The position numbers were made by a program, and so were the translations under genes. A DNA stretch of 63,806 bases, the filler included, from Pelomyxa schiedti (taxonomy: Eukaryota; Protista; Evosea), in assembly GCA_020536535.1 (NCBI GenBank). It is 15 parts of 15 records of this genome, joined end to end, with 100 filler letters (N's around TTAATTAATTAA, not from the genome) between each part and the next. Parts side by side here need not be neighbours in the genome. Positions count along the whole stretch, not along the records: positions 23,833 to 35,399 come from JAHLWZ010000164.1; 14 more parts are not named here. One strand, 5' to 3'. The notes under the pieces were generated by a model. It saw only the letters and a list, made by a program, of their open reading frames with translations, did no database searches and had not been told where the DNA came from. This document shows positions 4,026 to 35,928 of the stretch, piece after piece (position 1 is the stretch's first letter; each line of letters starts with the position of its first letter).

Positions 4026-6812
4026 TCAAAGAACGTTCTTTTGCTGAATTGGGGTGCGGCAGACAAGGCACTTCCTCATTCCAACTGCAGCACACTGTGT
4101 GTGGAATGGTGAAAGAGAAAAGAGCAACAAGATCATGAAATACCTGAGAGCACAGGACAATGTGACCACAGGGCTGGAATTGAACATTCGGCGGATTCTC
4201 GTCACATTCCATGCACAGTTTGTTCACAAGGGTGGTGGGAGTCAGTGCTGCAGTCGCACCTGCTGAAGAAGACGAGGTGGTGGAGGTGCATCCAGGAAGT
4301 GTGCTTGTGGTTACTGATGGCATCGAAGGGGTGGAGACAACGGCAGCCATGGAGGCAGCTTTGGATACCATGAGGTCAACAACAGCCTGTTGAGCCTGAG
4401 GGAGCAACTCAGAGAGCATCGACCACACACAAGGCAACGCAATGAACTGCTCGTCACCTTCCAGCCCTCGCATCAACATCCACTTGGTTTTGTGTTCCTG
4501 TGTCATCTTGGTGCACACTCCCTTGATCTCCTCGATTTCCTTGTGGAGGTTGAGGCCCAGTGTTATCTGATCAGAGAGTTCCTTTGACAGCATCGTTTTC
4601 TGGTCTGCAAGCTTTGTGCACTCTTCAAACCGGCACCCTTGAAGCTCACCAAGTGTGTCTGAGAGTGAGCCCAACCACTGGAAAGGTTGTGGCAAGCCGC
4701 TTGCTGCATCCAAGTGGAAATCTACAGAAATTTTATCCAAAACCGAAGGTTCACTCAGTGTCACCATCAAGAGTTCTTTCCCTTTTTGGATGAGGTTAAT
4801 CTTTCTTTCAGAAAGATTGGGGGTTGATTCGTTTATTTACCTTTTGTTGTTAGGGGAATGACAAGGTTCTCTCCTGTTGTTGCTGCTGCTGGATGCTTGC
4901 TTGCCAAAACCTTCTTTGTCAACTCAGAGATGCTCCTGGAGCACTGTTGAATCTCTGCCTCGCTGTTCTGAACTGTCAGTGTCTGCCCAAGTACCCTCTT
5001 GCTTGTTTCACATGTTTCATCAAGTTGCTTTTCGAGCAAGTCCTTCAGCTCATTGAGGTCTTGCAGATGTGATCTGAGTGCCTCATTGCATTGTGTGGCT
5101 TCTTGAAGGTGCTTGGTGATTTTGGCCAGTGACTCTCGAAGCAACATAAGCTCTGGGGCTGATTTTTTGAGCAATGCTTGGAACTGTGTGGTCAGCTTCA
5201 TGGCTTGGTTCAGTTCAAGGTCTGCTTTTCCTTCCCCACCATCTTGTGTTCCCACATTGGTTGGGATCAAAACTGAGGAACCTTTGCCTTCCAGTTGCTC
5301 TTGTTGTTGTTGTTGAATTTTTTGGTGCAACTGGTTGACCTCTTCAACGTGCTGTTGGTGGTTTCTTTTTGTGACTTGCTTTTGTTATGTAAAAGAAAAA
5401 AAAAAACGTTTAACTGAAGTTGAGGAAAAACAAAAGCGCACCTCCCACTCCATATTGGACCTTGCAATTTCCTCTTTTAATCTTTCTTGGAGTGTTAGTT
5501 TCAATGTAAAGATTTCGGTTCCAACCTTCCAACTTCCTCCTGGAGAAAGATTACAGAGAAAAGATAGGAGAAATAACTAACCTCCCACACATTCTTGGCT
5601 GACTTCATTTCCTCTTTGAATTGTGCCTCCAGTTCACTTTTTTCATTGGTGTGCTCCGTCTTCAGATTCTTGAGAATTCCCAAAGAGTACCCCATCAGTT
5701 CGAAAAAAAAAAAGAAAGAGGGATGTCATGAAGCTCACCTCAATCTGCTGGTGGTGCCTGAACCACAGCACTGATGAGCCCATCTGATACTGCACAACGG
5801 CGGCGGCAGGAGTCCCCCCACTGCCATCACATTTCTGTTGAAATTTGTTGTTGTTGAGAATGCCCTTCAGTGGAAGAAGGCTGTTCCCCTCAGAAGATGC
5901 TGAGAGTGTGGCAATTCCTTCACCGCAGCATGTCCAACCACCATCATTGCCTCTTCCACTTTGTTGAGGTTGTGGCGTGAAGGTGCCTTCAAACATGTCA
6001 CCGTTTGGCCACCTCCTCGTTCCCTTCTTCTGCTCACCCATCTCCCACAATCCCGTGAACGATGACCCATCCCTTGACCACGTCTTTGTCCCTTCACCGT
6101 CCTCCTTGCCACACACCCACTGGCCCTCGTACCTGTCACCGTTTGCCCACAGCCTCACACCCCGACCATGGAACTTGTCATCCTTCCACTCCCCGACGTA
6201 GCTCCCTCCACCACCACCATGGTTTTTGTCACCAAACAACATCCTCCCTGTTCCGCTCCTCTTGCCGTGGTCAAACGTGCCGTGGTAGATGTCACCTGAT
6301 CCATCAGGTGACACCCACGTGCCACTCCCGTGCCACTTGTCTCTGTCCCACTCCCCCTCATACACAGTTGTTGTTGTGGCCCCACGTTCACCGTCCAATT
6401 GCCTCCTCCTGTGCGCACCCCACCCCTGCATCTCATGCCCCTTTGTTGTTTCATTCCACGCCCACTCGCCATCGTAGACGTCGGTCTTGGTGTGCCACGT
6501 TCCCCTCTTCCATTTGGCGTCCCTCCACAGGCCCTCGTACCACGACCCACCGGGCCGATGGTTGACGCCCCAGCCGTCCCTCTTGTCGTTGTGGTACTCA
6601 CCATCGTGCGTCTCCCCGTCGGGCCACGTGTACACGCCTCGGCCGTGCCTGTTGTTGTCCCTCCACTCGCCGTCGTAGGTCTGGCCGTTCGGCCAATTGC
6701 AGGCGCCCCTGCCGTCGCGTTTGTTGTTGACGAGGCGCCCTGTGTACGTGGCATTTTTGGCCACATTGTGAGCGACAACCATGGTGGTGGTTCCAAGTGC
6801 CGCAGTCGCCAT
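4026..6812 (-). CDS. MORN-repeat / coiled-coil / C3HC4 RING protein (copy 1)
   Basis: MORN repeats (YTGRLVNNKRDGRG; YDGEWRDNNRHGRGVYTWPDG), coiled-coil exons 4833-5330, then CMECDENPPNVQFQPCGHIVLCSQ|CAAVGMRKCLVCR across a GT-AG intron. ATG at 6812, stop at 4026. Confidence 0.85.
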
Positions 6813-16500: not shown

Positions 16501-18195
16501 TACATTCCACAAGTACCACGATAGTCCACTTGCTGGTGGCCACCTCTCCTTTGCGCGAACCTATCAGAAGCTCTGCAGTAGATACTGGTGGCGGGGGATG
16601 GCCAAAGAGACATTAGAGTACTGCAAAACATGTGAGGAGTGCCAGCGGTATAAAGGGGCACCTCACCTGGCAAGAGGTACAGCCAAGAGTCTTCCAGCAC
16701 CAACAGGACCAAATGATGTTGTTGGGATTGACTACATTGGCAAATTAGTACGAACTAGACAAGGAAATCAATACATACTAGTGATTATAGACCACTTCAC
16801 ACACTGGCCTGCTGCCTTTGCAGTCCCATGTGCAGATGCTGCAACAACTGCAAGGATACTCATAGACCACTGGATTTGTGTGCGTGGGAGACCTAGGGTT
16901 CTTGTGTCAGATCAAGGGACTCATTTCTTAAATGACCTGGTGGAGGAAGTGAATGCCTTATTCCAAGTGGAGCAACGAAATTCCTCAGCCTACCACCCAC
17001 AGACAAATGGTCAGGTGGAACGGTTTAACAAAACACTCATGCAAATGCTTCGAATTTATGCAGACACTCACAAGAGGGAGTGGGATACATACCTTCAACC
17101 AATATTGCTGGCATACAGAACGAGTGTAAATCCAGTGACAGGAGAGACTCCTTTCTTCCTAGAGTTTGGGCGTGAGGCAGTGCTACCTGGAGATAGTAAT
17201 TACCAGTGGCGAGAAGAGGAGGCATCCCTGGATGAGGGGAAGAGACAGTGGATTCACAAACTCAGGGAGGCAAGGAATTTTGCCCAGATTTCAATCCAAA
17301 AAGCCAAGCTTAGGCAAGAGAATGAGATGCAAAGGAGGAGGGTACCTTTTGAATTTGAGATCAACACTAAGAAGAGCAGGAAGCAAGGAAGTTTGCTCCA
17401 CGCTGGGAAGGCCCTTTCAGAATCACAGAAAGATTCACGGAGAATCTGTACCAGCTGGAAAACGAGAGAGGGTTCCCACTCTTACAGCTAGTCCATGTTA
17501 ATAGGTTAAAGAAGTATGAGGAAAGGGGAAAGCAACCAGTGGACACACCACGTGTGCAGGACAATTTCAACCTTGACCTGGAACCTGAAGAAGTGTTTGA
17601 GGATCAGGAACACAGGCACAAAAGGTGGAAGGAGAAAGTGCTCAGGAGGAAAATGAACAAAGGGAGAACCACCATACATAAACAGATTGAAGGATACTCC
17701 AATGACCCACTAGCGGTTCGAAACAAAGGTGAGGACCCCACCGACATTGAGTGGCAGCCAGATGTTGGTGGTGATAGTGATGACTCCAGGGTGGACTCAG
17801 ACATAGACCAGAGCACCGACGTAGATGCCAACACGGACACCAATGCTGCAAAAAGCGACTCCGACACTCCGCGGCACAACGCCGACGCGGAAGCCGACGC
17901 CGATGTCGATGTCGATGTCGATGTCGATCCCGACGCCAACGCCAAAGGGGACACCAATGTTGCTAGAGCCGAACCCGACACTTCGCCACGCGGCGCGGAT
18001 GCCGATGCCGAGGCCGATGCGGACGAAGGCGTAACAACCGCACCGCCGACTCTACCACATACAAGAATTTCAACTTTGAACACGAAAGCAACCGCGGCAA
18101 CCGTAGCCACGCGACCAAAACGGAAAGTCCAGTTGCCAAGCAAGTACAAGGACTACTACCTACCAGGACACAACAAACACCGTCGAGTGTCATAG
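13487..18195 (+). CDS. pol: pol polyprotein (PR-RT-RNase H-integrase); integrase C-terminus frameshifted near 17355-17390
   Basis: VDTGSGRSLIS (protease), LRFCVNYRKLN and YIDDVLVFG (RT), ESDASGIGVGAVL (RNase H), H-x6-H..C-x2-C and IDYIG..SDQG..VERFN (integrase). KFAPRWEGPFRI (GPY/F motif) continues in another frame to the stop at 18195. Confidence 0.93.
13673..13930 (+). repeat. Three in-frame 87-90-bp tandem repeats in the pol N-terminus
   Basis: Units start at 13673, 13760 and 13850, encoding QRCR(AI/MK)NHLKPYRHKPLRHGRVA(R/H)LKL. Confidence 0.93.
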
Positions 18196-18218
18196 GGCGT
18201 GTGGGGACACACGCGTAC

Positions 18219-18230
18219 AAACAGGGGGGA
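18219..18230 (+). promoter_or_regulatory. Polypurine tract
   Basis: AAACAGGGGGGA, 3 nt upstream of the TGT starting the second LTR. Confidence 0.8.
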
Positions 18231-18454
18231 TGATGTGAGGAGTGATGGCCGATGGATTCAGGGAATCTCGCCGCGGTGATTGGGCGCCAAGTTGGCCAAC
18301 TAATTATGGTCATTCACGGGAACGAGTGCGTTCAAGCTAACAGGCACCAGCCAANNNNNNNNNNNNNNNNNNNNNNNNNNNNNNNNNNNNNNNNNNNNNN
18401 NNNNNNNNNNNNNNNNNNNNNNNNNNNNNNNNNNNNNNNNNNNNNNNNNNNNNN

Positions 18455-18958
18455 CCAACCGACCCACCTTATAAACCCCCTCTGTATCGTGTAAATAGTT
18501 AAGACAAAGTTGTTATATAAGCAAACACAAACATATGAGAACAGCAACACTATTCAGTCCACAACGTCCCTCTCCCAGACCACCACTCTTACAAACTGGT
18601 GGAGGTGCCATAGATCACCCAGTTGCTACACCACTGAGCTCAAGTTAACAAGACTGTCAATGTTCAGCAGCTACGCAAGGAAATGAGAGAGGAAAGGAAT
18701 GCGGAGTTGGGAGACGTGAAGAACATGCCGACAGCCATTTCCCTAAAGCTGGGGATACCAGAATCACCCGATTCTTGGGTGGAGAATCTGTCGCGAGTAA
18801 GTGAAAGAAATGTGCGAATTACATTCCCAAATTGCAGAGGAGATATCCGGTTCAAGCTGGCGAGCAAGGACTCTAGAGACAAAATCAAGCTTCCAGAGCT
18901 CGGACCTAATGAATTTAATGTCAGGCAATGGGTCGAACATGCAAAGATGTTTCTTACC
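18455..18958 (+). mobile_element. Second copy of the same Gypsy family: LTR 3' half, PBS and 5' gag
   Basis: The LTR end at 18593 is followed by the PBS (18597) and gag. It lacks the equivalent of 12340-12443 but has an extra 41 nt (18797-18837). Confidence 0.85.
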
Positions 18959-19058
18959 NNNNNNNNNNNNNNNNNNNNNNNNNNNNNNNNNNNNNNNNNN
19001 NNTTAATTAATTAANNNNNNNNNNNNNNNNNNNNNNNNNNNNNNNNNNNNNNNNNNNN
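18959..19058. other. Artificial scaffold linker 44N-TTAATTAATTAA-44N (first of 14)
   Basis: Identical structure starts at 18959, 23733, 35400, 36554, 38614, 45044, 46816, 50335, 51795, 53264, 54912, 58609, 60930 and 62294. The 12-mer puts stops in all six frames. Confidence 0.97.
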
Positions 19059-19556
19059 AGCCCTGGTCCCCCGCTCGCCACCGCCGTCGCGGTCGCGGTC
19101 GTAGTCGTCAGAGTACAGCCGCATGCGCCTGGTCTCCTCCACCAGCCTCCTCTCCCCTGCGCCCTTCTCCTTCTCCTTCTCCCCTGGCCCCCTTCCCTGC
19201 CCCTCCTCCTTCTCATTCTGAGCCGAAGATCCCGCGCCCGCGTCGCCCGTGCCCATTGCAATATCAGGCTCTGGCTCCGCTTCCTTGGTTGTGGCCCCTT
19301 GGTCGCCTTTCCCCTCGGTAGCTTTGGGTCCATCGGGCTTGGAGTCGGTGTTGCTGGGGGGCCGAGGGAGGGCGAGGGGGCAGCGGCGGGGGTCGTGGGG
19401 GGCGATGTGGCGCCACCACGAGTCGACGAGGTACTGGGAGATCTGAGTGGTCTTGCCGCACCCGGTCTCGCCCACGACCACGACGGCCTGGTTGTCCCGC
19501 ACCGCGTCGAGGATCGCCTCGCGGTACGCGGCTATCGGCAGCCGACCGGACGACAT
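19059..19556 (-). CDS. DEAH-box RNA helicase, N-terminal fragment (cut by scaffold end)
   Basis: [43 protein letters not shown] is the canonical DEAH pre-motif I plus motif I. Confidence 0.8.
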
Positions 19557-19929
19557 CGTCGTAGTCGCCGCGCTCGTGTCACACGCAGTACCTACTGTGC
19601 TGCTGGTCATCACACCTCGTATTGTTCGTCGAATTTCTGTTATTCCACGCCGCATGTAGCGAAGGGATAACTCAATCTGTGTGCGATTCTGAAATGTTCC
19701 CCTTGTGAAATTTGTACTAGTACTTGTGACACCCCTGCAACAAACACAACAGCAGCAGAAACAACAAATACAGAGGAGACAAATGAAAACGAACCCACAC
19801 TGCCTGTTGGGTTGTTTGTTGTGCCAAGGGGCAACTTATCAAGGCTGATGGGAGGTAAGCGTGGCAATGGGAAGGCGGATTTTTTTTTTACTGTACTAGT
19901 GCAGCTGTATATGATTCATGTAAATATTG

Positions 19930-21000
19930 TTTCCAGAAAAGTCCGGATTCTGTATCTAAGGGCCAAGCAAGAATATGACACAGAGACGGACCGCTGGTAC
20001 TTCCATTCCTTCGAGGCAGCAGCTCAAAAACGGTGAGGAATACATAATTGCAAGAAGTATCTGCAATCAGCTCAGAAATCGGTTTCCCACTTCTAACTTC
20101 TGTATTCCTCATCACAAACAGTTGTAATGCACCGGGATCATGAGAGCCATTCTCTGAGGCAAGAACCCGCAATAAAATCATACAATCCCGGAATTGTTAC
20201 CTTCGCATACCCGTATGAAATTGCTCAGTACAATCACCACAGTAAATCAAGACTGCTTACGTGTGTGCCAAACGCTCTGCCGGGTGAGTATCTTATATAC
20301 TGATATGTTTCATTTGCACCATTTAGCTCACTACGAACTCAGAGTTATTCTACAAGCCAATTGCCGATAACTTGCTGGAGCCCCGTGAGATTAAATTCCT
20401 TGTTGCCGGGTACATGGCATGTTGGCTGTATCCTCTGCGGTGCCGCTTCAAGGACATTGTTGAGCAGAAATTAGTGCCTGGAGACGTTAGAAGTCACCCG
20501 GGATATGTTTGTATGCAGTATCAGTCAATGTGACTGCAACCTAATCAAATTCAACAGCTGGGAATTTGGAATCGGTGCAGCGGCAGACCCAGCAGTACGC
20601 GGAACATCTGCAACGCGCCAGGATTGTGGGATTCGGGTCACACCTTGGGTATCAGCTCAGCAAATCTGTTGAAGTCACTCTAGCCGGGGGTCTGATTGTT
20701 GGTGAAGTTCCATGGCAGGACGAAGCTTTCTGGAGGCAGATAGTAGTGGAGGTAGTCCATGACCATGAGGTTATAACCACCTTACCCAAAGGACAGGTTT
20801 ACGGCTCTATGTCCGTGGAAGAAATTGTGCGGACAATCAACTGGTGGCTGGAACATGACGATGAGAAGGATAGCGAGGGTCGCCAGGGCACAGGAACTAG
20901 TTGGTGCAAGATACACCAGGCAATGGTGGACCTCATACTGGAACAGCACAACATGTACCGGGATGGTGTCGTGGGTTGCACTGCCCGTATCAGTTTGTAA
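19930..21000 (+). CDS. Putative glycosyltransferase (YkvP/CgeB, Glyco_trans_1_2-like), multi-exon
   Basis: Exons read EIKFLVAGYMACWLYPLRCRF...HPGY and YAEHLQRARIVGFGSHLGYQLSKSVEVTLAGGLIVGE...IVRTINWWLEHDDE, resembling the C-terminal GT-B domain pattern Y...L.RARI....KY.E...AG. 5' end approximate. Confidence 0.5.
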
Positions 21001-21154
21001 ACAGGCACTGATTTTAGAACCTTTCTTCTCAATAGCAGTTCAGGGTTGAATTTTTGTGTTTTGTTGTTGGCATCATCACTCCACGATCAAATTGAAAAAT
21101 TGTTTGTTTGATTTTGATTGGACGACGGAACAGAAAAATAAAATAAACAGAGGG

Positions 21155-23041
21155 ATGGCAGCTACTACGTCGATAGGGGACATTGGGGGAGGATCTAGTA
21201 CTGTCAGTAGTAGCAGTGTTGCGGACAGTGGTGGGATAGGGACGTCACCGTTGTTGTTCTTCAATCAGCCTCTCGTACTAGACAACGTGCGCACCCGCAG
21301 TCACTTGCTTTTATTGTTTTAATTATTTCTTTGTGACCTTGGGAAACAGGGAACTGGCACAATCAAAGCGGATTTAGCTGGTGTCGAACACAAGCCAAAA
21401 CTTATCTTTTCTAACTGGTGAGGAGCCCTTTAAAAACTTTTTGTAGTCTTTCTTACCACATTTGCGTTGATACAGCGTTGGACGCCCTAAGCATGTAAGA
21501 GCAATGGCGGGAGCACTTGAAGGGGATCACTTTGTAGGGGAACGTGTAACCACAGACCTNNNNNNNNNNNNNNNNNNNNNNNNNNNNNNNNNNNNNNNNN
21601 NNNNNNNNNNNNNNNNNNNNNNNNNNNNNNNNNNNNNNNNNNNNNNNNNNNNNNNNNNNTTTTGTAGTCTTTCTTACCACATTTGCGTTGATACAGCGTT
21701 GGACGCCCTAAGCATGTAAGAGCAATGGCGGGAGCACTTGAAGGGGATCACTTTGTAGGGGAACGTGTAACCACAGACCTTAGGGGATTGCTCGCACTCT
21801 CCCACCCAATGACACATGGAATGGTTACAAACTGGACTGGTTAATATACATTTAACTTACTGCCAAAACTTACATTACATTACCTAGACATGGAAAAGGT
21901 CTGGAATTACACTTTTAACCGTTTGAAGATTCAATCTGACGAAGTACAGTTATCTTCCTTAATACTTTTATACCCTTACCATTTGTAGCACCCTGTTTTA
22001 CTCACGGAACCTCCTCTAACTCCACGCAACATGAGACAAAAATCAACGGAAATATTCTTTGAAACATTCAATTCCCCCGCATTTTTCACTGCTGTACAGT
22101 CAATTTTATCCATGCATGCACTCAAACCTTTCTAAAATACTGCTGACAGCTTTCAAAAGGTATTCTAGTGGTCATACCACTGGGCTCGTTTGTGACTGCG
22201 GAGACGGTGTAACACATGTTGGTGTGAATCTTCTTCTCTCACTCTCTAACACTAAAACACTCCTAGTACCGGTCGTTGAAGGTTTTGCAATTCCACACGG
22301 GATAATGCGGACTGACCTTGCAGGCAGGTAATATCTATTAAATATGACTGTCAAGTCAATATAACTAAAGCAATGCAGGGATGTAACGGAGCATCTACAT
22401 CTACTTCTACGGAAATCAGGATGTGTCTTTACAACTTCAGCAGAAATGGAGATTGTTCGTGAGATAAAAGAAAGTGCATGTTACGTCAGCGTAAAAACGC
22501 CCTCGGCCGACGATAAGCACAAGGAGGAGATAAAATACACCTTACCGGACCAGAGAGTTATTACTGTATGCAAATTGTCTCTACTGTTCCATTCACGTTG
22601 ATAGTTCAGCTTACAGACGAGCGATACCGGGCCCCCGAGCTTCTGTTCTCACCCGAGCAGATTGGGGACGAATCCCTTGGGATGGGCGATCTTGTATACA
22701 GTAGTGTTACTCGCGCTGACACCGACCTGCGTGGGCAGCTTTGGGCCAACGTGCTACTTTGCGGAGGTACAACTTTACTAGCAGGATTCGCACAGCGGCT
22801 CTTGGCCGAGATGAAAAAAAAGGCACCGCCAAACACCTACATCAAGATTTTCGCCTCCGCGGAAAGGCAATTCTCAGCCTGGTCCGGAGGTTCCCTTCTC
22901 GTCTCACTTGCTTCCTTCAAGGTACCTACCTTCTTTCACGTTACCTCACCATACTAACTAATAACCCAGAAAATGTGGGTTACCCGGAAAGAATACGACG
23001 AAGGTGGCCACGCGGTAGTCAACAGGAAGCTTCTCTTTTAA
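21155..23041 (+). CDS. ARP1: Actin-related protein 1 (centractin, dynactin subunit), multi-exon
   Basis: QPLVLDN|[25 protein letters not shown] (Arp1-specific), [61 protein letters not shown]. Contains an assembly gap with a duplicated flank. Confidence 0.88.
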
Positions 23042-23832: not shown

Positions 23833-24680
23833 ATCCACTTAATGTCAATGACTGATGATCCTTCCACACTCGTTTTGAGCACGGGAAGAAGTGATGGTAA
23901 ATCTAATATGATGAGGATAGAATAAATCAGAAGAGGCATTGGGGGCTGGCTTTGTTGGTTTTTGTTACCTTGGTGATATCTGTTATGTCCATTGAATGCC
24001 ACTTGAACAATTGACGATATTAATACCTTCAAAGAGCCTGCCGGGTTGTCGTTGGAGAACCTGATAAGCTTGTCGGCATTCATCTGATATCATCAGTTCA
24101 AAGGAGGAAAAGCGAGAACACACAAGAAGTGCCCGAACAAAAGGAGGCCAAGCATTCCTGTCGGGTGCAGCTTTGTCCGAACTGAACCGGAGGAGAATAA
24201 GAGGTGCCGAACCAAGCCGCGCTGCCTTGTGTTTCAGGTCCTCGAAATTGTACTCTACCGTTCGAGATGGTACTCCTTCACCGTCGGGAACTATGGCCAC
24301 CACAACAGACCCCTCTGACTTCGCGCACCCATCCTTCATCATCACACTCCCCTCAGAGTGAAGCACCACACAACCAACATCATTATCGCAACAGCAGGCA
24401 CTGATATCATTGTCACTTGTTTGAGAACTACTACACCCGGTCGTTGCATGATCCACATTGGCCTGCTGCTGCTGTTGTTGTTGTTGTTGTTGCGGTGCTG
24501 CCGTCAGCGATAATGATGTCGGTTGGAAGCGAAAGCAAGAAAGGTATTGTGGGTCCGTTACTGTGACGGTCGTAGTCGAGGCCTGCGCGGCGATTCGTTC
24601 GCGAACCAGCACTTCGAACAGCTTCGACGCCGGCGGGGCATCGCTGTTGGCGTGGACCACGAAACAATTCACTGTCCTCA
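23833..24680 (-). CDS. Hypothetical protein (Q-rich insert), cut by scaffold end
   Basis: Long ORF with GC-rich 5' end. No recognised family. Confidence 0.4.
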
Positions 24681-24900
24681 TCAACGTTGATGCGCGGTTG
24701 GCAAGTTGACAACACAAGCGATCTGTTCTGTTGTTGTTTCTTTTTCTATCGCCAATGAGGAAAAAAACCTGTTCGTGTTGTGGCACTATGAGAGTCGACT
24801 TGCATCAGGGGCCCAGCTTCTCACAGAGATTTGTCCGGGCTTGAGAAAAACAGTCCCTGAACCTGATTCTAGGAACCATCCCTACCATCACCCGTGCGTG

Positions 24901-27900
24901 ATGGCGGGGCATCCGCTGGTGGCAGAGGTTACTGCCAGACTTGCAAACCCCGAGAACAGACTGCTGATAATAGTCGTCGACTGTTCGAATGCCACGTCCG
25001 AGGAGGACCTGGCGAACCTGAGGGACCTGGTGCTGCCCGCCATGCTCGGCCGCACTGCCGGCGTGAAGGCCACCATCATCAAGTTCAGCACGGAGGCCGA
25101 AACCGTGTGCCAAATAACAGACAGACCCGACAGTTTGCTCCAGAGCCTTAGCCTCCTCAGGCGCGCCAATCGCGGCCCCGCGGACTTTGGGGCTGCACTA
25201 TCGGCAGCTCGTGGTGTCATCACCAGGTTTGCGTTCAGCACCTCGATCCCGCTTTTATTTCTGGTTGCCAACGGGCCACATGTGGGAGGCGACATAGAAC
25301 TTCATAGCCTCCTTTCCCTGGTAATGTATCCTTTGGTTCCTATGTTGGAGCAACAGTTGATTATTTTTTTTTTTTTTTAGAGACCTCCAATCGACTTCAT
25401 TGGTTTTTCATACCAACATGAGACGGCATTGCAGTCCTTTCTTCTCTCGGGGCCAGTGTACTCTTTAGCTGATGTACATGGGGTTGTTGATGCACTTAAT
25501 AGTATGACCCCGAAGTGCGTGGAATCCCGAGTTACTATCTCGTTTGAACAAGGCTCGAATGCCACTTTACAGCGATCCACAGACCCCCTCTCTTTGCTTA
25601 TGACTGTTGAACTGTCTTCAGTATTGGATGAAATCCATAAGGTATACATAAAATGTCAGGCAATCTTTCCTCACTCCTCCCAAAAAGGGAACAGTGATAT
25701 CTTTTCTAAGTGGAGCTGATTCTTTTTATCTCCCCTGTGATATTACTCTCCATTGTTCTGCATCACACTGGTCTCCATTTAAGACACCTATACAATTTTA
25801 TCCATGTGCCAATGCAAGAAAAAAAATGATACCAATACCTGAGGCAATCCTGTACGAGTGTGCTATTAAAGATCCAAATGGACGACAGATCCAAAAGTGC
25901 ACAGGGTGTGTACAGATCCTCCTAGGTGGGTAAGCAGGCCAAAGAATGTTAATAGTAAGCATTTACTATTAAATAATGAGAGAATCAATCAAATTGCGAC
26001 TTTCTGATCTAACTCGATTTCTCTCTCTTGCTATTTTCAGCTTGGTTTGGCGGTGATTTCATTCCGCCTCAGGGTGTAGATCATATGAATATCCTTCTAT
26101 GGGGAATGCCGCACTCAGGCAAGACAGCTTTTCTGAATGGATTAGTGAGCACGTTTCACAGCGGCCCGGAAGTAATCCATCCATTATGTTCCTATCCAAT
26201 CCCAGGACCAATTACTGAAAACCTTACTTACTACCACCTGGGAAGCCTGCTTCCTGAGAAGTCTATAACGTCAGATCTGACCTCTCAGCTCCCAATTTAT
26301 ATTGTGGATCCTTGGGGATTTGAACCTGGTCGTGAAAATATTGCACACTTCCTTGACGGCACTGTAGGGAATGAAACTTTGAAGAAAGACTATGACAATG
26401 AACCCCAAATACTAGCCAATCCAAAAAACCGGAAGGACTGGGAAATCTCAGCAATCATTTTCTTCATTCCGATTACAGTGGTGGAAGAAGACCTGCGACA
26501 AATCTCGTATCTTATAGGATATGCCATAGAAGAAGGGTTCAAGCCAACAGTTGTTTGCAACTTCTTTAACGACCTGAGTTCAACAGTTGATGAGATGAAG
26601 TTGAGGTACGAGAACATTGTAACCAAGTCACACCTGACATCGAAGGATGTATTCCTTTTCGAAAACTATGTGAATGAATCCATGAAGACAATGTCAAAAG
26701 ATCTTCAGTACTGGGAAGTCTTTCACCATGCCTTCACTGCAGCTACCGGCAAGCCTCTAAAAGGGGACCCTAAAATTGACTATTTACTGGGGTCTACAAG
26801 CATAAGAGCTGTCATCACCCCAGTGTCCAACAGTTCGGTAGTACTGCTGATTGACTTGAATGCAACTCTATATTTGGAGGCTAGAGACCGATTAATAGCT
26901 GCTATTTTTGGTGCTGTAAAGGGGGCACTCTTCACCGTGATATTAGTCGGTCACGATCGTGCTTATGTTCTTTTTGATGGAATTTTCGATCTCGACGAAG
27001 CCAAGCAGCGGCTTTCTAGTACCTTTCTTTGCACTCGTTTTTTTTTCCTCAGCTAATTCTAAACAAGATTTCCCGTTGGACCAAAGCGCCGCTAATCTAT
27101 CTCTTGGTGCTACGGAACTGCTAAAAGTTATTTCCACAAAATCCTCTGCAGTGTCTTGCATTGTCATAACCAAATCAACAACTGCCACAAACTCTGTTGA
27201 AACTTTACATTCTATGCAAGTCAGTGTTGGTCCAAAGAACCTTGTTCTTATTATCACTGAACCAAGTGATGACAGTGAGCAGCAGTCTCTGCTAGGGTCC
27301 TCTGAAAGAACAATTTACTTGAAACACAACAACCAGTGCACTAACGTGGAATACACCCTTAAGAATGTCTTGGAAGCGGCTGTAGAGTGTCCTTTTGTTG
27401 TTGAAGCAATATTCCAACCAAATGGAACCACACCCAGCCATCAGCAGAACTTGTTTTTTCCTCTCAAATTTCAAGTTACAATATACCACAAACCTGGTTG
27501 GGCAAACATTCAATCAGTAAGTCCCCTTAGGGTGATGGTTCAAAATTAATTAATGTCAAATTAGCGAAGCATATTCAAAATTGAGGGCAATGACTTCTAT
27601 GTGGGGCAATCCTGCCCAGTTCCTCATCCCATTTCACAAGAGCATCCATTTAGGAAGACACTCCTTTTAGATGTACCACCACAATCAAGAGGTGTAATCT
27701 CACCACTTCCTGGACAAATCACATTCACAATAACACATGGCAATACTTGCTTTGAGGGAGCATTCATTTTACCAATAGGTAATTATTTCATTGTTCACTA
27801 TTATTGAGCTTGACACTTATTCTTATTGATTTCCGGGTGGAGAAACTGCTTGGCATAGGCTCGAATGCTGCTGTGTTCAAAGTGAAATTTCAAACCACAA

Positions 27901-29041
27901 CAACATCCAACAATAGCATCACCAGTTCCACAACCACCTCAACTTCTTCATCAACATCATTAACTTCGCATGTGAATGTTTCAGATTCCACAGTAGCAAA
28001 AACAAGAGACATGGTGATGAAGATCATTTTCAACTGGGAGAACACACCCCAGGAGACGTTGTCCCGGAGCAAATACATGGCTGAGTGTCTTGTCCTCTCA
28101 TCATTCCCAAATCACCCAAACGTGATTCACCCTCTTGGTGCTTTGGTCATCCCTTGGTATTTCTCCTCTTGCAATAAAAGCACCTTTTTCCAACTCAGTC
28201 ACATAGCCTGCCAGCCGAGTTCGTGGAGAAAATTCCAAGTGACAAGATATATTTCCGGGAGCAACTCTGTAACAACAAGTCATTGGCCATCCTCATGCCC
28301 TATTGTGGGATCACCTTGTCATCGTTCTTCTCATCCAACTCCAGCAACAATATGACAGCTGAAGCTGCACGGGATCTCTTTGTTCAAGGGCTCCATGCCA
28401 TCTACCACATTGAGTTGCATTTTGTTGTTCACAGGTTCTTTCCCACTCAACACCCAACTTCTCTTTCAGTGACAGACAAAACAAACAATAAACACAGGGA
28501 CATCAAGGGAGACAACATTCTCATTGACCCAGAGACTGGTAAGCTGACACTGATCGACTTTGGTGAGGCTCAGCACTGCCCAAACATGGAGGCACTCATG
28601 TCTGCCATGTCACAGGCATGGGGCAACCCAGGCACGATGCCACCAGAGCTGAGCATTTTCCTCAGGAGGATCACGACGGAAACCAGTGGTGTGTTCTCAT
28701 ACTCAAAGTGTGACTCCTTTGCGCTCGCCCTCACTTTCTGGAATACTCTTCTGCCACAGACCAACAGGTTCATTGGGAGCACAATGAACCACGACATGAG
28801 CACGTTCAACACCCAGTCACTCCTCAGTCACTTCCCTGTCCCTTTGTTTTCTCTGATAGGTTCACCATCACAACAACACTTGAGGGCTGAATCACCTCAA
28901 CCACAAACACAACCACCCCGTGGTGCAACGTCACGGCACCAACGCAACAATGTGCTTGAGTCAGTGATGATTGGAATGATGAACCCTGACAAAGCAGCCA
29001 GGCTCAGTGCTGCTGAGGCCCTCCAGTCGCTCACTTTGTAG
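24901..29041 (+). CDS. Gene A1: vWA - IFI44-like P-loop NTPase - vWA-like - beta-rich linker - Ser/Thr kinase
   Basis: vWA: LLIIVVDCS...IIKFSTEA...DFGAALSAA...LFLVANG. P-loop: NILLWGMPHSGKT, VDPWG, FENY..E...KDLQYW (IFI44-like). Second vWA-like: VVLLIDLNAT...CIVITKS. Kinase: LGIGSNAAV, MVMK, HRDIKGDN, DFG, TMPPE. Joining the kinase needs one uncertain splice at 27779. Confidence 0.75.
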
Positions 29042-29286
29042 CTCCTCAAATCACACACCGAGTTCACCTCATTTCAAAACACAAATACCAAATCCAATAC
29101 AAACGCAAAAATGTAGCCATTGTTTCCAAGATGAATAAATATCTTGTGCCTCCTTATTTATTTTGTTAGCCCGATTTTTTTTTTTTTGCATTGCTCCTTT
29201 TGGGGCGAAAGTGACAAGAGACAGACTTTCAGCCTGCACATATCCACAGTATGTTTTCAACAACAGTGAAGGAGGGTGGTCAGAAA

Positions 29287-31096
29287 TCAGGGCTCTCTCT
29301 CTGCCACATAAACAACAGTTTTCCCCTCGATGACATCCACCACACTCCTGAGGGGTACCTTGTTCCTAACTGAAGGGGCAACCTTGGTCCTGTTCCTGAC
29401 GAGAATATCAGCGTCAAGCTGTGTTGAGAGCCACTCGACAGACTTGGCCAGGAAATTATCTGGCATGTTGAGATCGCACAGGAATATTGGTGGAGTTGAA
29501 GACTTGGGGATTGCCTTGTAAACCCCCAGGACGCACGGGCCTGCAAGCAGCAGGCTTCTTTCCAGTTTGGAGCTCTTTTGAACTCTGATTGAGGGCGTGC
29601 CTCCTGGCTGCAGTATTTGCCTCAGTGTGAGCTCAGCCTCCTTCGCAGTGGGCACTGGCACCCCAGCGGCATCCACAAAGACCCAAGGTGAGAGGTACGT
29701 GAACTCTCCCGTTTCGTCAACGTAGTCCCGCACGGCGGAAAGTTTCTTGTTGCTGCGAGGTTGTGGGACTGGGAATGAGGAAAGGAGTGATTCGAACCTG
29801 TTTATTCTAGACAGATTGGAGGAACCGTTTGTATGCAAAACATGGATCTGGTCGAGTACTTCTCCCAGGCTGCAAGAGGGTGAGGTTGCCAGAGACTGTG
29901 GAGTGAGGAAGGGAGGAGGGTTAGGTGGATTCCAACAGTCTATTCCCCACACATTGGACGTTTCAGAGGCCATAGTCCCCTCAAGATAACACTCCCGAGG
30001 ATGTGCCAGAAGATATGAAATGGCATTCCTGAAAACAGGTAAAAAACGGTGACAAAGCAAAAGGGAGAAGAAGGAAAAAACCATTACCTATAGGCAAGCC
30101 TCAAGATACCCCAGTACTGAAGATCCTTCTCCATGTTGCGTGTTGTTTCTTCAACATAATTTTCAAACTTAATCACAGACTTCTCAGGCAAATACGTGGT
30201 GGCACATATTTTTTTAAAGAGGTACTCCATCTCGAGCTCGTCTGACACACGGTTGATGAAGTTGCACACGACGATTGGATGCCTTCCAGACCTGATTATG
30301 GAAATCACGTGTGTGCCCAGAACTTCAAGCATCTGGGGGTTGAATCCAGTACCAATTGGGATAATTATGATGACTGAGTGAATGATGCGCGATTTGCCTG
30401 GCTTGACAATCATGTCGAAGGACTCGTCCATAAATGTTCCCGGTTCAACTTTCCCATTCAGGAAGTCCACAACACTCAACGTTGTGTAGTTGCTCTCTGA
30501 GATGCCCCATGGATCCCAGAAGTGCAAGTTGAGCCTCTTCATCATCTCGTCGGTTGGGGCGTTTCCTGGCAGAAGATCTGCAAGTGAGTGCTCAGGAGAT
30601 CTGCAGGTGACGTGGTCTGGCGCGGAAAAGGCCTGCAATTGGGTAAGCACATCTTGCCCAGAGCTAAAGGAGGTCGCCACTCCATTGCAAAAAGTACTCT
30701 TTCCACTGCCATACCATCCCCACACCTATTTTTTTTTTGGGTGCACAGACCAACACATCATTGATACCAGAATGTTGATCCTTGTCTTTGTTGGATTTCC
30801 CAACCTTGTCCTTTCTGGAAGCCACTCGGCTCCAAACCACGCTGTGTGGGGATGGGTTAAAAAAAAGATAAAAAAGTGTAGGTGAAGGTGGGGGCACCAA
30901 GGAGAAGGGTAACACAGCCCATGTACTTGGCTCCATCCATGAAGCACTCATACAGGACCTTGTCAGGCACAAGCTCTTTGTGGATAAGAGCCCTCTGTCC
31001 TGGCCGAAGGGTGACTGTCGTCACAAAGGGATGTTCCTTGTCTGCATCTGCAGTTGTCTTGACAAATTCCTCCAAGTAGAATCCGGGAAGGAAGTG
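29287..31096 (-). CDS. Gene B1: IFI44-like P-loop NTPase with unknown C-terminal domain (5' part lost in gap)
   Basis: WGWYGSGKS, FWDPWG, RIIHSVIIIIP, FENYVEETTRNMEKDLQYW, then ORF 29287-30040. Confidence 0.75.
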
Positions 31097-31196
31097 NNNN
31101 NNNNNNNNNNNNNNNNNNNNNNNNNNNNNNNNNNNNNNNNNNNNNNNNNNNNNNNNNNNNNNNNNNNNNNNNNNNNNNNNNNNNNNNNNNNNNNNN

Positions 31197-33237
31197 GATC
31201 TCGACGAAGCCAAGCAGCGGCTTTCTAGTACCTTTCTTTGCACTCGTTTTTTTTTCCTCAGCTAATTCTAAACAAGATTTCCCGTTGGACCAAAGCGCCG
31301 CTAATCTATCTCTTGGTTCTACGGAATTGCTAAAAGTTATTTCCACAAAATCCTCTGCAGTGTCTTGCATCGTCATAACCAAATCAACAACTGCCACAAA
31401 CTCTGTTGAAGCTTTACATTCTGTGCAAGTCAGTGTTGGTCCAAAGAACCTTGTTCTTATTATCACTGAACCAAGTGATGACAGTGAGCAGCAGTCTCTG
31501 CTAGGGTCCTCTGAAAGAACAATTTACTTGAAACACAACGACCAGTGCACTAACGTGGAATACACCCTAAAGAATGTCTTGGAAGTGGCTGTAGAGTGTC
31601 CTTTTGTTGTTGAAGCAATATTCCAACCAAATGGAACCACACCCAGCCATCAACAGAACTTGTTTTTTCCTCTCAAATTTCAAGTTACAATATACCACAA
31701 ACCTGGTTGGGCAAACATTCAATCAGTAATTCCCCTTGGGATAATGGTTCAAAATCAATTAATGTCAACTTAGCGAAGCATATTCAAAATTGAGGGCAAT
31801 GACCTCTATGTGGGGCAATCCTGTACAATTCCTCATCCCATTTCACAAGAGCATCCATTTAGGAAGACACTCCTTTTAGATGTACCACCAAAATCAAGAG
31901 GTGTAATCTCACCACTTCCTGGACAAATCACATTCACAATAACACATGGCAAGACTTGCTTTGAGGGAGCCTTCATTTTGCCAATAGGTAATTATTTCAT
32001 TGTTCACTATTATTGAGCTTGACACTTATTCTTATTGATTTCCGGGTGGAGAAACTGCTTGGCATAGGCTCGAATGCTGCTGTGTTCAAAGTGAAATTTC
32101 AAACCACAACATCCAACAATAGCATAACCAGTTCCACAACCACCTCAACTTCTTCATCAACATCATTAACTTCGCATGTGAATGCTTCAGATTCCACAGT
32201 AGCAAAAACAAGAGACATGGTGATGAAGATCATTTTCAACTGGGAGAACACACCCCAGGAGATGTTGTCCCGGAGCAAATACATGGCTGAGTGTCTTGTC
32301 CTCTCATCATTCCCAAATCACCACAACGTGATTCACCCTCTTGGTGCATTGGTCATCCCTTGGTATTTCTCCTCTTGTAATAAAAGCACGTTTTCCAACT
32401 CAGCCACATAGCCTGCCAGCCGAGTTCGTGGAGAAAATTCCAAGTGACAAGATATATCTCCGGGAGCAACTCTGTAACAACAAGTCATTGGCCATCCTCA
32501 TGCCCCATTGTGGGATCACCTTGTCATCGTTCTTCTCATCAAACTCCAGCAACGAAAAGACAGCTGAAGCTGCACGGGATCTCTTTGTTCAAGGGCTCCA
32601 TGCCATCTACCACATTGAGTTGCATTTTGTTGTTCACAGGTTCCTTCCCGCCAACTTCTCTTTCTGCGAAGTGACAGACAAAACAAAAAAAAATAAACAC
32701 AGGGACATCAAGGGAGACAACATTCTCATTGACCCAGAGACTGGCAAGCTGACACTGATCGACTTTGGTGAGGCTCAGTGCTGCCCAAACATGGAGGCAC
32801 TCGTATCTACCACGTCACAGGCATGGGGCAACCCAGGCACGATGCCTCCGGAGCTGAGCATTTTCCTCAGGAGGAAGACGACGGAAACCAGTGTGTTCTC
32901 ATACTCAAAGTGTGACTCCTTTGCACTCGCCCTCACTTTCTGGAATGCTCTTCTGCCACAGACCAACATGTTCATTGGGAGCACAATGAACCACGACATG
33001 AGCGCGTTCAACACCCAGTCACTCCTCCGTTACTTCCCTGTCCCTTTGTTTTCTCGGATAGGTTCACCATCACAACAACACTTGAGGGTTGAATCACCTC
33101 AACCACAACCCCCACCAGTGGCAACGTCACAGCACCAACGTGACAATGTGCTGGAGTCAGTGATGATAGGAATGATGAACCCTGACAGAGCAGCCAGGCT
33201 CAGTGCAGCCGAAGCCATCCAGTCACTCACTTTATAG
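31197..33237 (+). CDS. Gene A2: diverged copy of A1 3' half (vWA-like plus kinase)
   Basis: Near-identical to 26987-29041 with scattered substitutions and indels. Kinase catalytic motifs intact; stop at 33237. Confidence 0.8.
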
Positions 33238-33441
33238 ATCGTCAATTCATATTTTTCTGAATCGCACGTGCTCCCTGTCTGGGGTGATCAGTGGTTCTTT
33301 TCTGGTGGTGTTGCAGCGGTTCGTGACGATGCTCATGATGAATGGAGCGAAGTTGTAGCTTTGCCGGTGTTGTGTGCATGTGAATGCCAAGCGTTTTTCA
33401 ATTTGCAGGTAATTTAATCATTGTAAAAATGTTGGTGTGAA

Positions 33442-35180
33442 TTAAATCAGGACTGCTCTGTGTATCCTGGCTGTGGAGGAAGGGAGGAGGGAGTTAGGTG
33501 GATTCCAACAGTCTATTCCCCACACATTGGACGTCACAGAGGCCTCTGTCCCCTCGAGAAAACACTCCTGAGGATGTGCAAGAAGATATGAAATGGCATT
33601 CCTGAAAAAAGTGCAAATACCAGTGACAAAGCAAAAGGGAGAAGAGGGGAAAAGCAATTACCTGTAGGCAAGCCTCAATATGCTCCAGTACTGGATATCC
33701 TTCTCCATGTTGCGTGTTGTTTCTTCAGCATAATTCTCAAACTTAATCACAGACTTCTCAGGCAAATACATGGTGGCACATATTTTCTTGAAGAGGTACT
33801 CCATCTCGAACTCGTTTGACACACGGTTGATGAAGTTACACACAACGATTGGATGCCTTCCAGACCTGATTATGGACATCACTTGTGTGCCCATAACTTC
33901 AAGCGCCTGGGGGTTGACTGGAGTACAAATTGGGATAATGATGATGACTGAGTGAATGATGCGTGACTTGCCTGGCTTGGCAATCAGTTCAAAGGACTCG
34001 TCCATGAATGTTCCCGGTTCAACCTTCCCATTCAGGAAGTCCACAACACTCAACGTTGTGTAGTGGCTCTCTGAGATGCCCCATGGATCCCAGAAGTGCA
34101 AGTTGAGCCTCTTCATCATCTCGTCAGTTGGGGCGTTTCCTGGCAGAAGATCTGCAAGTGAGTGCTCAGTGCATCTGCAGGTGATGTGCTCTGGTGCTGC
34201 AAAGGCCTGCAATTTGGTAAGCACATCTTGCCCAGAGCTAAAGGAGGTCGCCAGTCCATTACAAAAAGAACTCTTTCCAGAGCCACACCATCCCCACACC
34301 TTTTTTTTTTTTTTGGGTTGGATTGGTATCTGCACATAATTGATACCAGAATGTTGATCCTTGTCTTTGTTGGATTTGCCAACCTTGTCCTTTCTGGAAG
34401 CCACTCTGCTCCAAACCACGCTGTGTGTGGCGAGTCAAAAAAAGAAAAAAAAAGGGGGCAGGTGAGAGTAGGGCGCACCAAGGAGAAGGGTAACATAGCC
34501 CATGTACTTGGCTCCATCCACGAAGTACTCATACAGGACCTTGTCAGGCACAAGCCCTTTGTGGATAAGGGCCCTCTGTCCTGGCCGAAGGGTTACTATC
34601 GTCACAAAGGGGTGTTCCTTGTCTGCATCTGCAGTTGTTTTGACAACTTCCTCCAAGTAGAAGCCAGGCAGGAAGTGCAGGACAGTGCCCTGCAAGCAAC
34701 GTTTCTCAATTAACTTTTATGGGGAAATCAGGCTTACCCCTGGAACGACACCAGAAACAGAAGTGGGTTCCATGGAGACATGCAGGGACACAGGGTTGGT
34801 GATCATCTGTAAAGTTGTTCCAAATTGGCTGCAAGAAATGCGGATTGGTGGTTCTGGAAGCTTATCTAGAGGCTTGAGGCTGCCCAGAAGAGTGAAGAAG
34901 TTGCTGCAACTGGAAGGTAAGAATGTCTTTGCTCCAGGAAGAAGAGCAGCAAAATTTTGCTCTGACAGATGGCTGCCAAATCCAACAGCAATCATTACTG
35001 GTGTGGGAAGCAACACCATGAGTTCACCATATGGCTTGGTGATTGGGGATGAAAATTGCCCACTGGTGAAAAGAAGAACAACAAGCTTCGATGTCTCTGA
35101 CATAGTACCAAGAGCAACAAATAAAGCAGACCTGAGTGCACTGGCCAGGTTTGCGCTCCCACCATTGAATCGCATTCCAG
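33442..35180 (-). CDS. Gene B2: vWA-like - IFI44-like P-loop NTPase, C-terminus truncated relative to B1
   Basis: GGSANLASALRSAL...KLVVLLFTSG...MIAVGFG (vWA C-half), WGWCGSGKS, FWDPWG, KDIQYW. Diverges from B1 after WNPPN. Confidence 0.72.
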
Positions 35181-35928
35181 GGTGATACTGGGTAGGCAAG
35201 CGGGGATTGTCTGGGAACTGTGTGCTTCTGTGGGGATGTGTAGTTCGTTGTGTGACGAGAAAGCAGAGAACAAGCACAAGATCAAGAAAGGATTCTATTA
35301 TTTGTTCTGTTTGTTGTTTGTTTTGATTTATGAGGTTTGGGTCGTGATTCTAAGGTCGGAGTGTGTCGGGCTTATAAGGACTCGAAAAGGACTTGAAATN
35401 NNNNNNNNNNNNNNNNNNNNNNNNNNNNNNNNNNNNNNNNNNNTTAATTAATTAANNNNNNNNNNNNNNNNNNNNNNNNNNNNNNNNNNNNNNNNNNNNC
35501 ATTTGTGCCTTAGAACGAAAAGAAATACACGTGACAGATGAGGCCACTGGTGCGGACGTCATCACCCTCTGGCTGTGTGGTTCTCTTGACACTGTCTGGT
35601 CCCACTTCTCTTTCTCTCTCCTGTCATCCCTATGAAGCCAAAGAGAATTTGCGATAATTATTTGTTGGTTTTTCCACAGACGTGGGGTAGGTCAAAAGCC
35701 ATACCCGCTTCAGAGGGGTTTCAAAGAGTGGCAGCCATTTGGCACTCAGGCTTAGATCCACAATATTTGGAGGCAGGGCGAATAACAGACGGAAGGATGG
35801 CAAAGTGGGTTTGGGTTGGTCATTGACGTCATGGTGGTGATGACGCATGTCGTCGTAAGAATGTATAACCCACACTCACAGAGAGCGTTTTCAACGAACT
35901 GAGTGCAGAACCTTTTTTGATCCAGAAA

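Follow-up and report, generated by a model that had tools for sequence, protein, structure and literature searches.

A candidate vWA-GTPase-vWA-kinase fusion with an IFI44-like G domain in Pelomyxa schiedti

Several described systems join a GTPase, a vWA domain, and a kinase in various pairings. The ROCO/LRRK proteins, which are numerous in Dictyostelium, consist of a Roc GTPase, COR, and a kinase, and the bacterial TerY-P triad is composed of the vWA protein TerY, a PP2C phosphatase, and a Ser/Thr kinase, coded for by separate genes of an operon. The nearest described GTPase-plus-vWA protein is cpRAS-vWA, in which a circularly permuted Ras (motif order G3-G4-G5-G1-G2) lies N-terminal to vWA, and which has a scattered distribution including Amoebozoa and Heterolobosea (Elias and Novotny 2008, PMC2430557). 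The G domains of IFI44 and IFI44L have a GxxxxGKS motif and a DxxG followed by a hydrophobic Leu, with an incomplete G4 in IFI44 (bioRxiv 10.1101/2020.02.24.963900). Here we describe gene A of the anaerobic amoeba Pelomyxa schiedti, located in a window of 63,806 nucleotides (nt) that joins 15 parts of assembly GCA_020536535.1, and predicted to code for a vWA domain, an IFI44-like G domain, a second vWA-like domain, and a C-terminal kinase; all positions are those of the window unless stated otherwise.

Gene A resembles each of these systems in part. Like the ROCO/LRRK proteins it has interaction modules, a G domain, a spacer, and a C-terminal kinase on one predicted polypeptide, but the G domain is IFI44/septin-like with no Roc or Ras Pfam match, a second vWA module (vWA'-M') stands in place of COR, and the kinase is from a Pelomyxa-specific clade. 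As in TerY-P, a cytosolic vWA domain is associated with a Ser/Thr kinase, but gene A is one eukaryotic gene with an added GTPase and a degenerate metal ion-dependent adhesion site (MIDAS); there is no PP2C among the five genes of its contig, JAHLWZ010000164.1, and a pattern scan gave no bacterial relative, such that the TerY-P analogy drawn in the initial annotation is only thematic. GTPase and vWA share one protein in cpRAS-vWA too, although in gene A the motif order is canonical and the G domain is IFI44-like and C-terminal to vWA. With IFI44 and IFI44L the gene A product shares the G-domain fold, including its C-terminal helices, as well as GxxxxGK[ST], DxxG plus a hydrophobic residue, and a weak or absent G4, but it has a vWA and beta-sandwich N terminus instead of TLDc, followed after the G domain by vWA'-M'-kinase. 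We know of no interferon system in Amoebozoa. The initial annotation had not recognized the architecture as described, and a literature search likewise found no account of it, nor of an IFI44 link to Amoebozoa or Dictyostelium, the co-occurrences being incidental; gene A is an undescribed variant of known parts.

Domain organization and transcript support

Gene A is best explained as a single fusion gene for a cytosolic multidomain signaling protein, organized as vWA plus beta-sandwich (M domain), IFI44-like G domain, degenerate vWA plus beta-sandwich (vWA'-M'), and kinase, with the kinase putatively gated by the GTPase, a reading in which we have moderate confidence. Its contig (11,567 bases; window 23833-35399, the window coordinate being the contig coordinate plus 23832) belongs to an assembly made from single-cell amplified DNA with RNA-read-pair scaffolding and annotated with Augustus, PASA, and EVM (PMC8887013). 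Among the five NCBI gene calls on the contig, gene A is a single hypothetical protein of 1167 amino acids (aa) at 24901-29041 (+). The model in Table 1 was rebuilt from a three-frame translation and GT-AG sites, and its product is ~1170 to 1224 aa depending on the choice at two junctions. One of these is intron 4, which is either 27019-27052 (34 nt) or 27019-27067 (49 nt); the latter, together with a 206-nt intron at the M'-to-kinase junction, would reproduce the 1167 aa of NCBI.

Table 1. Positions of the parts of gene A and of neighboring genes in the window
Feature	Position	Strand	Description
Gene A	24901-29041	+	9 exons, introns of 34-115 nt; translation in frame, single terminal stop
Gene A exons 1-4	24901-25320, 25381-25641, 25688-25925, 26041-27018	+	Rebuilt model
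Gene A exons 5-6	27053 (or 27068)-27516, 27565-27792 (or -27778)	+	Rebuilt model
Gene A exons 7-9	27843 (alternatives 27859 or 27985)-28156, 28207-28434, 28498-29041	+	Rebuilt model
vWA domain 1	24949-25453	+	aa ~17-165; Pfam VWA_2 and VWA
vWA 1 MIDAS motifs	VVDCSNA 24973-24993 (DCSNA 24979-24993); RGPADF 25171-25188; LVANG 25261-25275	+	Thr to Ala, Asp to Asn
M domain	25513-26060	+	aa ~185-306; beta-sandwich after vWA, ending in conserved linker helix LLAWFGGDF
IFI44-like G domain	26058-26754	+	aa ~313-545; exon 4; family alignment, AlphaFold model
G domain motifs	G1 GMPHSGKT 26103-26126; switch-I Thr in GPITEN 26205-26222; G3 VDPWGF 26304-26321	+	
G domain motifs	AIIFFIP 26451-26471; atypical G4 VVCNFFND 26550-26573	+	No NKxD
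G domain C-terminal block	ENYVNE 26661-26678; KDLQYW 26697-26714	+	
vWA'-M' module	26784-27792	+	aa ~555-863; divergent; LLIDLNAT 26844-26867
M'-to-kinase junction	27779-27984	+	Candidate introns 27793-27842, 27779-27858, 27779-27984
Protein kinase	27843-29038	+	Pfam Pkinase 55 bits (cut-off 31.7)
Kinase motifs	Glycine-rich loop 27843-27884 (if included); VMK Lys 28008-28028; alphaC Glu (YMAEC) 28074-28088	+	
Kinase motifs	HRDIKGDN 28430-28516; DFG (DFGEA) 28556-28570; PPE 28631-28648	+	HRDIKGDN intron-split
Gene B	29287-31096	-	vWA-M-GTPase, uncharacterized C-terminal region; convergent with gene A; 5' end cut by N gap; NCBI 395 aa
Gene C	31197-33237	+	vWA'-M'-kinase; NCBI Pelo_1884; starts at gap
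Gene D	33447-35175	-	vWA-M-GTPase paralog, Pelo_1885; ~90% identical to gene B over 1.2 kb

The domains proposed in the initial annotation are all borne out. Exon 1 matches Pfam VWA_2 (31 bits, cut-off 27) and VWA (23.8 bits, cut-off 23.8), and the degenerate DCSNA motif is also evident in the family alignment; the P-loop domain carries GMPHSGKT, DPWG, an atypical G4, and the ENY/KDLQYW block; and the kinase has a significant Pkinase match and the beta3 Lys (VMK), alphaC Glu, HRD..N (HRDIKGDN), DFG, and APE-like (PPE) motifs of Hanks-type kinases. The second vWA-like domain has no Pfam match in gene A, but when relatives' vWA-M modules alone are used to build a profile, it hits the gene A product in two places, aa 17-313 (106 bits) and aa 652-859 (35.9 bits, E 2.8e-13), and the second vWA of paralog P0004 passes Pfam VWA. 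The G domain and the start of vWA' are coded for by one exon (exon 4), and these two parts are therefore physically fused.

An AlphaFold model of P0004 residues 1-290 (pLDDT 87) has a vWA domain followed by eight strands (174-278) and a helix. The vWA part superimposes on vWF A domains with a root mean square deviation (rmsd) of 2.3 to 2.4, indicating a Rossmann-like vWA fold. Solved structures matching both vWA and M are ANTXR2, with a vWA plus an Ig-like domain, and the archaeal Sec23/24-like ArnB, with the vWA part dominating the scores. Exon 3 is Cys-rich, but its cysteines vary among relatives, and a zinc-finger reading was therefore rejected.

At least 57 P. schiedti proteins (P0040-P0096), with 40 to 79% identity, make up the family of this kinase; their fusion partners are Sel1, ankyrin, MORN, SH3, or Ras/Roc domains, and the DNA contig depth climbs from 30 to 100-1000 over the kinase. 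The breadth of fusion partners and the depth suggest that the kinase is a promiscuous lineage-specific module, and its joining to Ras/Roc shows that a GTPase-kinase pairing recurs in the Pelomyxa genome. Over the catalytic-loop region the nearest solved kinases are PINK1 (~100 residues) and PIM1 and GSK3 (~50 residues); phmmer against PDB with exon 9 alone gave no match. Several family members are misleadingly named, for example as 'calmodulin-dependent protein kinase' or '3-carboxymuconate cyclase'.

The study that produced the assembly also yielded RNA contigs from single-cell libraries, which support much of the model. Zero-mismatch contigs cover exons 2-3, part of exon 4, exons 5-6, and kinase exons 8-9, and in the G-domain exon 26703-26831 is covered by an RNA contig. 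The RNA contigs confirm three gene A introns (25642-25687, 27517-27564, and 28435-28497), and intron 28157-28206 is confirmed only in the near-identical copy, gene C. The predicted exon 3/4 splice (intron 25926-26040) exactly rebuilds the family linker LLAWFGGDF. The single plus-strand gene proposed initially agrees in span with the NCBI call, and its continuity over 27779-27984 is a prediction; no RNA contig spans the whole of gene A. One RNA contig starts at 24911, 10 nt past the ATG at 24901, and is preceded by a Smart-seq template-switch oligonucleotide; it has five mismatches to gene A, and its source may be a paralog, conceivably the 5' half that gene C lacks here, or else the template may have been switched internally.

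Affinities of the G domain

The G domain belongs to a family that, judged by sequence, is rare and mostly amoebozoan. The G-domain exon gave nothing in Pfam, PDB phmmer, or a word-indexed protein search, and an exhaustive HMMER search of 1.84 billion representatives returned only 30 relatives, the best with 36% identity. The named ones are from P. schiedti itself, the dictyostelids Acytostelium subglobosum, Dictyostelium purpureum, and Synstelium polycarpum, as well as Nematostelium gracile, Pellita catalonica, and the heterolobosean Pharyngomonas kirbyi; the remainder are short metagenome contigs, and a profile word search with the family added only further metagenomic relatives. A pattern scan of prokaryotic and viral collections, using a tighter alignment, found no relatives; being pattern-dependent, this result is a weak negative. 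In the family alignment T, D, G, and P are invariant, including the switch-I Thr, and G3 is DPWGF in gene A versus DPWGL in most relatives.

Similarity to IFI44, which the initial annotation had proposed for the P-loop domain, is supported at the level of the fold, with the predicted models placing the G domain as IFI44-like within a septin-like assemblage. Embedding searches with the gene A domain score IFI44-like clusters at 0.92 to 0.93, and three family members agree. With an AlphaFold model of the domain (pLDDT ~90 in the core), the top ten family sets in an ESM Atlas shape search are all IFI44/IFI44L-type or unnamed animal G-domain clusters, and the alignment extends over 232 of ~242 residues (rmsd 3.1), including the C-terminal helical extension. 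The template modeling (TM) score of the gene A model against IFI44-type clusters is 0.6 when normalized on the 325-residue query, and that of the Acytostelium relative, from the Atlas's own model, is 0.79 to 0.83 over 234 to 242 residues. The domain also fits the published IFI44 motif pattern in its G1, a G3 followed by a hydrophobic residue rather than Gln, and a weak G4.

A profile of 25 family members against PDB sequences matches septin-9 and septin-3 best (E 5e-7), followed by IRG and Toc34, and precomputed Pfam assignments of relatives are Septin or MMR_HSR1. No IFI44 protein is among the matches of the HMMER searches with the G domain, two of which were limited by word matching or length. 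The TLDc domain, the N-terminal partner of IFI44, is absent from gene A and its relatives, where Pfam finds vWA instead, and the Atlas IFI44 clusters carry PF07534 TLD. These findings favor an alternative, which we consider unlikely, in which the G domain is an independent branch of the septin/Toc34/AIG1-GIMAP/IRG assemblage and its IFI44 likeness reflects a shared ancestral fold. Fold alignment to solved chains is consistent with this too, giving a generic TRAFAC GTPase with a flat Z of ~13 across many members and the longest alignments to Toc33 and yeast Cdc septins; PDB has no IFI44 structure for comparison, and gene A itself has no Pfam match in this domain. The septin match runs only from G1 to the block after G3 (IHAVIF.IP, like RVHCCLYFI in septins), the family alignment has no AKAD/NKxD G4, neither a septin unique element nor a polybasic region is seen, and the C-terminal helices differ. 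Septins and GIMAPs are also in the Atlas yet are never among the top sets for two different family members, and the near-full-length coverage, the TM scores, the embeddings of three members, and the motifs all favor IFI44. An EF-Tu likeness that dominated a PDB Foldseek search of the G-domain model was set aside because the query contained the domain that follows.

The junction between M' and the kinase

Several observations weigh against a single GTPase-gated fusion, both at this junction and elsewhere in the gene. The family alignment shows three of the five MIDAS positions to be degenerate, without the complete set of DxSxS, Thr, and Asp, and intact motifs (DxSxS/GSTN/TDG) are present in dictyostelid, Pharyngomonas, and metagenome relatives. 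G4 is atypical, lacking NKxD; dN/dS between copies A and C is ~0.5 with few changes, indicating only moderate constraint; and among the RNA contigs none bridges the G domain to the kinase. At the junction, it takes one specific splice to bring M' and the kinase into the same frame, with M' ending in frame 1 as ...ILPIGNYFIVHYY before a stop at 27805-27807, and the kinase N terminus (LTLILIDFRVEKLLGIGSNAAVFKV) lying in frame 0, together with the glycine-rich loop DFRVEKLLGIGSNAAVFKV and a Ser/Thr-rich insert within 27779-27984. A brute-force search found no GT-AG or GC-AG intron that joins the frames while keeping DFRVE, and with canonical splices either DFRVE is lost ahead of the glycine-rich loop or the loop is truncated or missing altogether. 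The NCBI models drop the loop, yet an RNA contig keeps this stretch.

The first splice model for exons 6 and 7 (27793-27842, 50 nt) is doubtful because it removes the conserved DFRVE and because its donor reads AT in the paralog L001. The acceptor of the second (27779-27858, 80 nt) is absent in L001. The third (27779-27984, 206 nt) is the NCBI choice for gene C and P0004 and deletes the glycine-rich loop; however, an RNA contig of gene C retains 27853-27984 while both downstream introns are spliced, which speaks against a predominant use of the 206-nt intron. The sole RNA contig crossing 27779-27850 is wholly unspliced.

The loop itself is conserved. It is encoded at 27849-27884 as LGIGSNAAVFKV, its presence in the protein hinging on the splice, and LISATxxDFxVEKLLGTGSNAAxFKV is common to more than 40 Pelomyxa kinase paralogs. 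Genes A and L001 are 91% identical over 27810-27899 versus ~80% in confirmed introns, with a ratio of nonsynonymous to synonymous differences (pN/pS) of 0.15 to 0.22, and the stretch thus appears to be translated. The annotation solves the splice and frame problem by deleting this ATP-binding loop, which matters to users of these gene models. Between the loop and the beta3 strand there is a low-complexity Ser/Thr-rich insert (27885-27990; TTTTSNNSITSSTTTSTSSSTSLTS) with a pN/pS of ~1.3 and lengths that differ among paralogs by multiples of three. A noncanonical 29-nt intron (27779-27807 or 27780-27808) would yield a perfect in-frame product, with ...ILPIG joined to LTLILIDFRVEKLLG.

Since only a specific splice would join the two frames, a separate kinase transcript has to be considered. 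Under this alternative, which seems to us improbable, vWA-M-GTPase-vWA'-M' would stop at 27805-27813 and the annotated fusion would be a convenience of gene prediction, with the kinase either expressed separately (from an internal start, a non-AUG start, or an unseen upstream exon) or a decaying remnant. The difference in frame and the stop are conserved in genes A, C, and L001 (window 27779-27860; L001 ~5355-5430), which favors two products, as do the failure of any canonical intron to keep DFRVE and the glycine-rich loop in frame, the unspliced contig, and the apparent translation of the loop. However, there is no frame-0 ATG ahead of the beta3 lysine from which a stand-alone kinase containing the loop could start, gene A offers three canonical GT-AG introns that would keep the frame, and the adjacency and orientation of the two parts are kept in three loci with 81 to 95% DNA identity. 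Moreover, the glycine-rich-loop exon is always internal in ordinary paralogs, and the RNA contigs have no template-switch 5' end near 27800.

Relatives, possible function, and genomic setting

The same architecture of vWA, G domain, second vWA, and Pkinase is present at a second P. schiedti locus, P0004 (1698 aa). In the family members from outside Pelomyxa, both the named amoebozoan ones and those from unnamed environmental sources, vWA-M-GTPase is followed by zinc ribbons, whereas the Pelomyxa tails are either uncharacterized (P0002 and gene B) or vWA'-M'-kinase (genes A and C and P0004). The kinase fusion is, on this comparison of predicted proteins, a Pelomyxa innovation in which a duplicated vWA-M and a kinase from the organism's own expanded family replaced the zinc-ribbon tail.

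If gene A codes for a single fusion, its vWA-M modules would act as protein-binding platforms that are probably metal-independent, and the septin-related G domain, with its intact P-loop, switch-I Thr, and DxxG but no NKxD, would be a nucleotide-dependent and probably dimerizing switch. This switch would gate or localize the C-terminal kinase, the presumed output of the protein, as in ROCO/LRRK-type GTPase-kinase proteins. We infer such gating by analogy with ROCO/LRRK proteins and with dimerizing septin-like GTPases.

An immune role is speculative and is suggested only by the likeness to IFI44, the clusters of multiple copies, and a tail that varies. As an innate-immunity sensor, which we think quite unlikely, the protein would use vWA to sense a viral, bacterial, or symbiont ligand, with the IFI44-like GTPase setting a threshold and the kinase signaling defense. 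IFI44 and IFI44L are published as antiviral interferon-induced genes, Pelomyxa has multiple, clustered copies of the family, what occupies the C-terminal effector position varies, and, according to PMC10579272, Pelomyxa harbors prokaryotic endosymbionts. Nonetheless, the A-C comparison does not point to diversifying selection, many generic interaction domains are likewise joined to this kinase, the published antiviral action of IFI44 is independent of its GTP-binding region, and no related system of prokaryotes or viruses emerged from the pattern scans. A broader and similarly doubtful scenario is that the IFI44-type GTPase is an old eukaryotic switch, with a pre-animal form of vWA-beta-sandwich-GTPase-zinc-ribbon in Amoebozoa and Heterolobosea, that in Pelomyxa has been wired to a kinase in a ROCO/LRRK-like manner and amplified in clusters for cell-autonomous surveillance or symbiont control.

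IFI44 and IFI44L are in wide use as markers of the interferon signature, and little is understood of their biochemistry and origin; a related G domain in amoebae, always placed after a vWA-beta-sandwich, would give the family a pre-animal history and testable partners. The Pelomyxa kinase fusion would be a natural experiment on what the switch controls, and gene A illustrates how a lineage-specific kinase expansion may recruit new regulatory modules.

Three paralogs lie downstream of gene A on the contig (Table 1). Gene B is 68 to 79% identical to P0002 (tblastn), and gene C, which copies gene A from 26988 on with 94.8% identity, is transcribed and spliced, with the RNA contig X3 assigned to it at 23 of 23 diagnostic sites. 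Genes B and D are each convergent with a kinase-bearing copy, and neighboring vWA-M-GTPase and kinase-bearing paralogs might pair through their G domains. A scaffold gap of 100 Ns (31097-31196) separates genes A and B from genes C and D and is bridged by the NCBI model Pelo_1884; the scaffolding across it is by RNA pairs, and the adjacency may therefore be an artificial join of paralogous loci, such that a tandem duplication of the A-B unit is not secure. An Rfam scan of the contig gave no match. Upstream of gene A there is an annotated 227-aa gene (23845-24681, -) with an overlapping open reading frame that has no Pfam match. On a second contig (L004), tandem vWA-GTPase genes are present at contig positions 10001-16259, and the cluster is adjoined at 18073-22105 by chromo-domain and reverse transcriptase/RNase H genes indicative of a retrotransposon.

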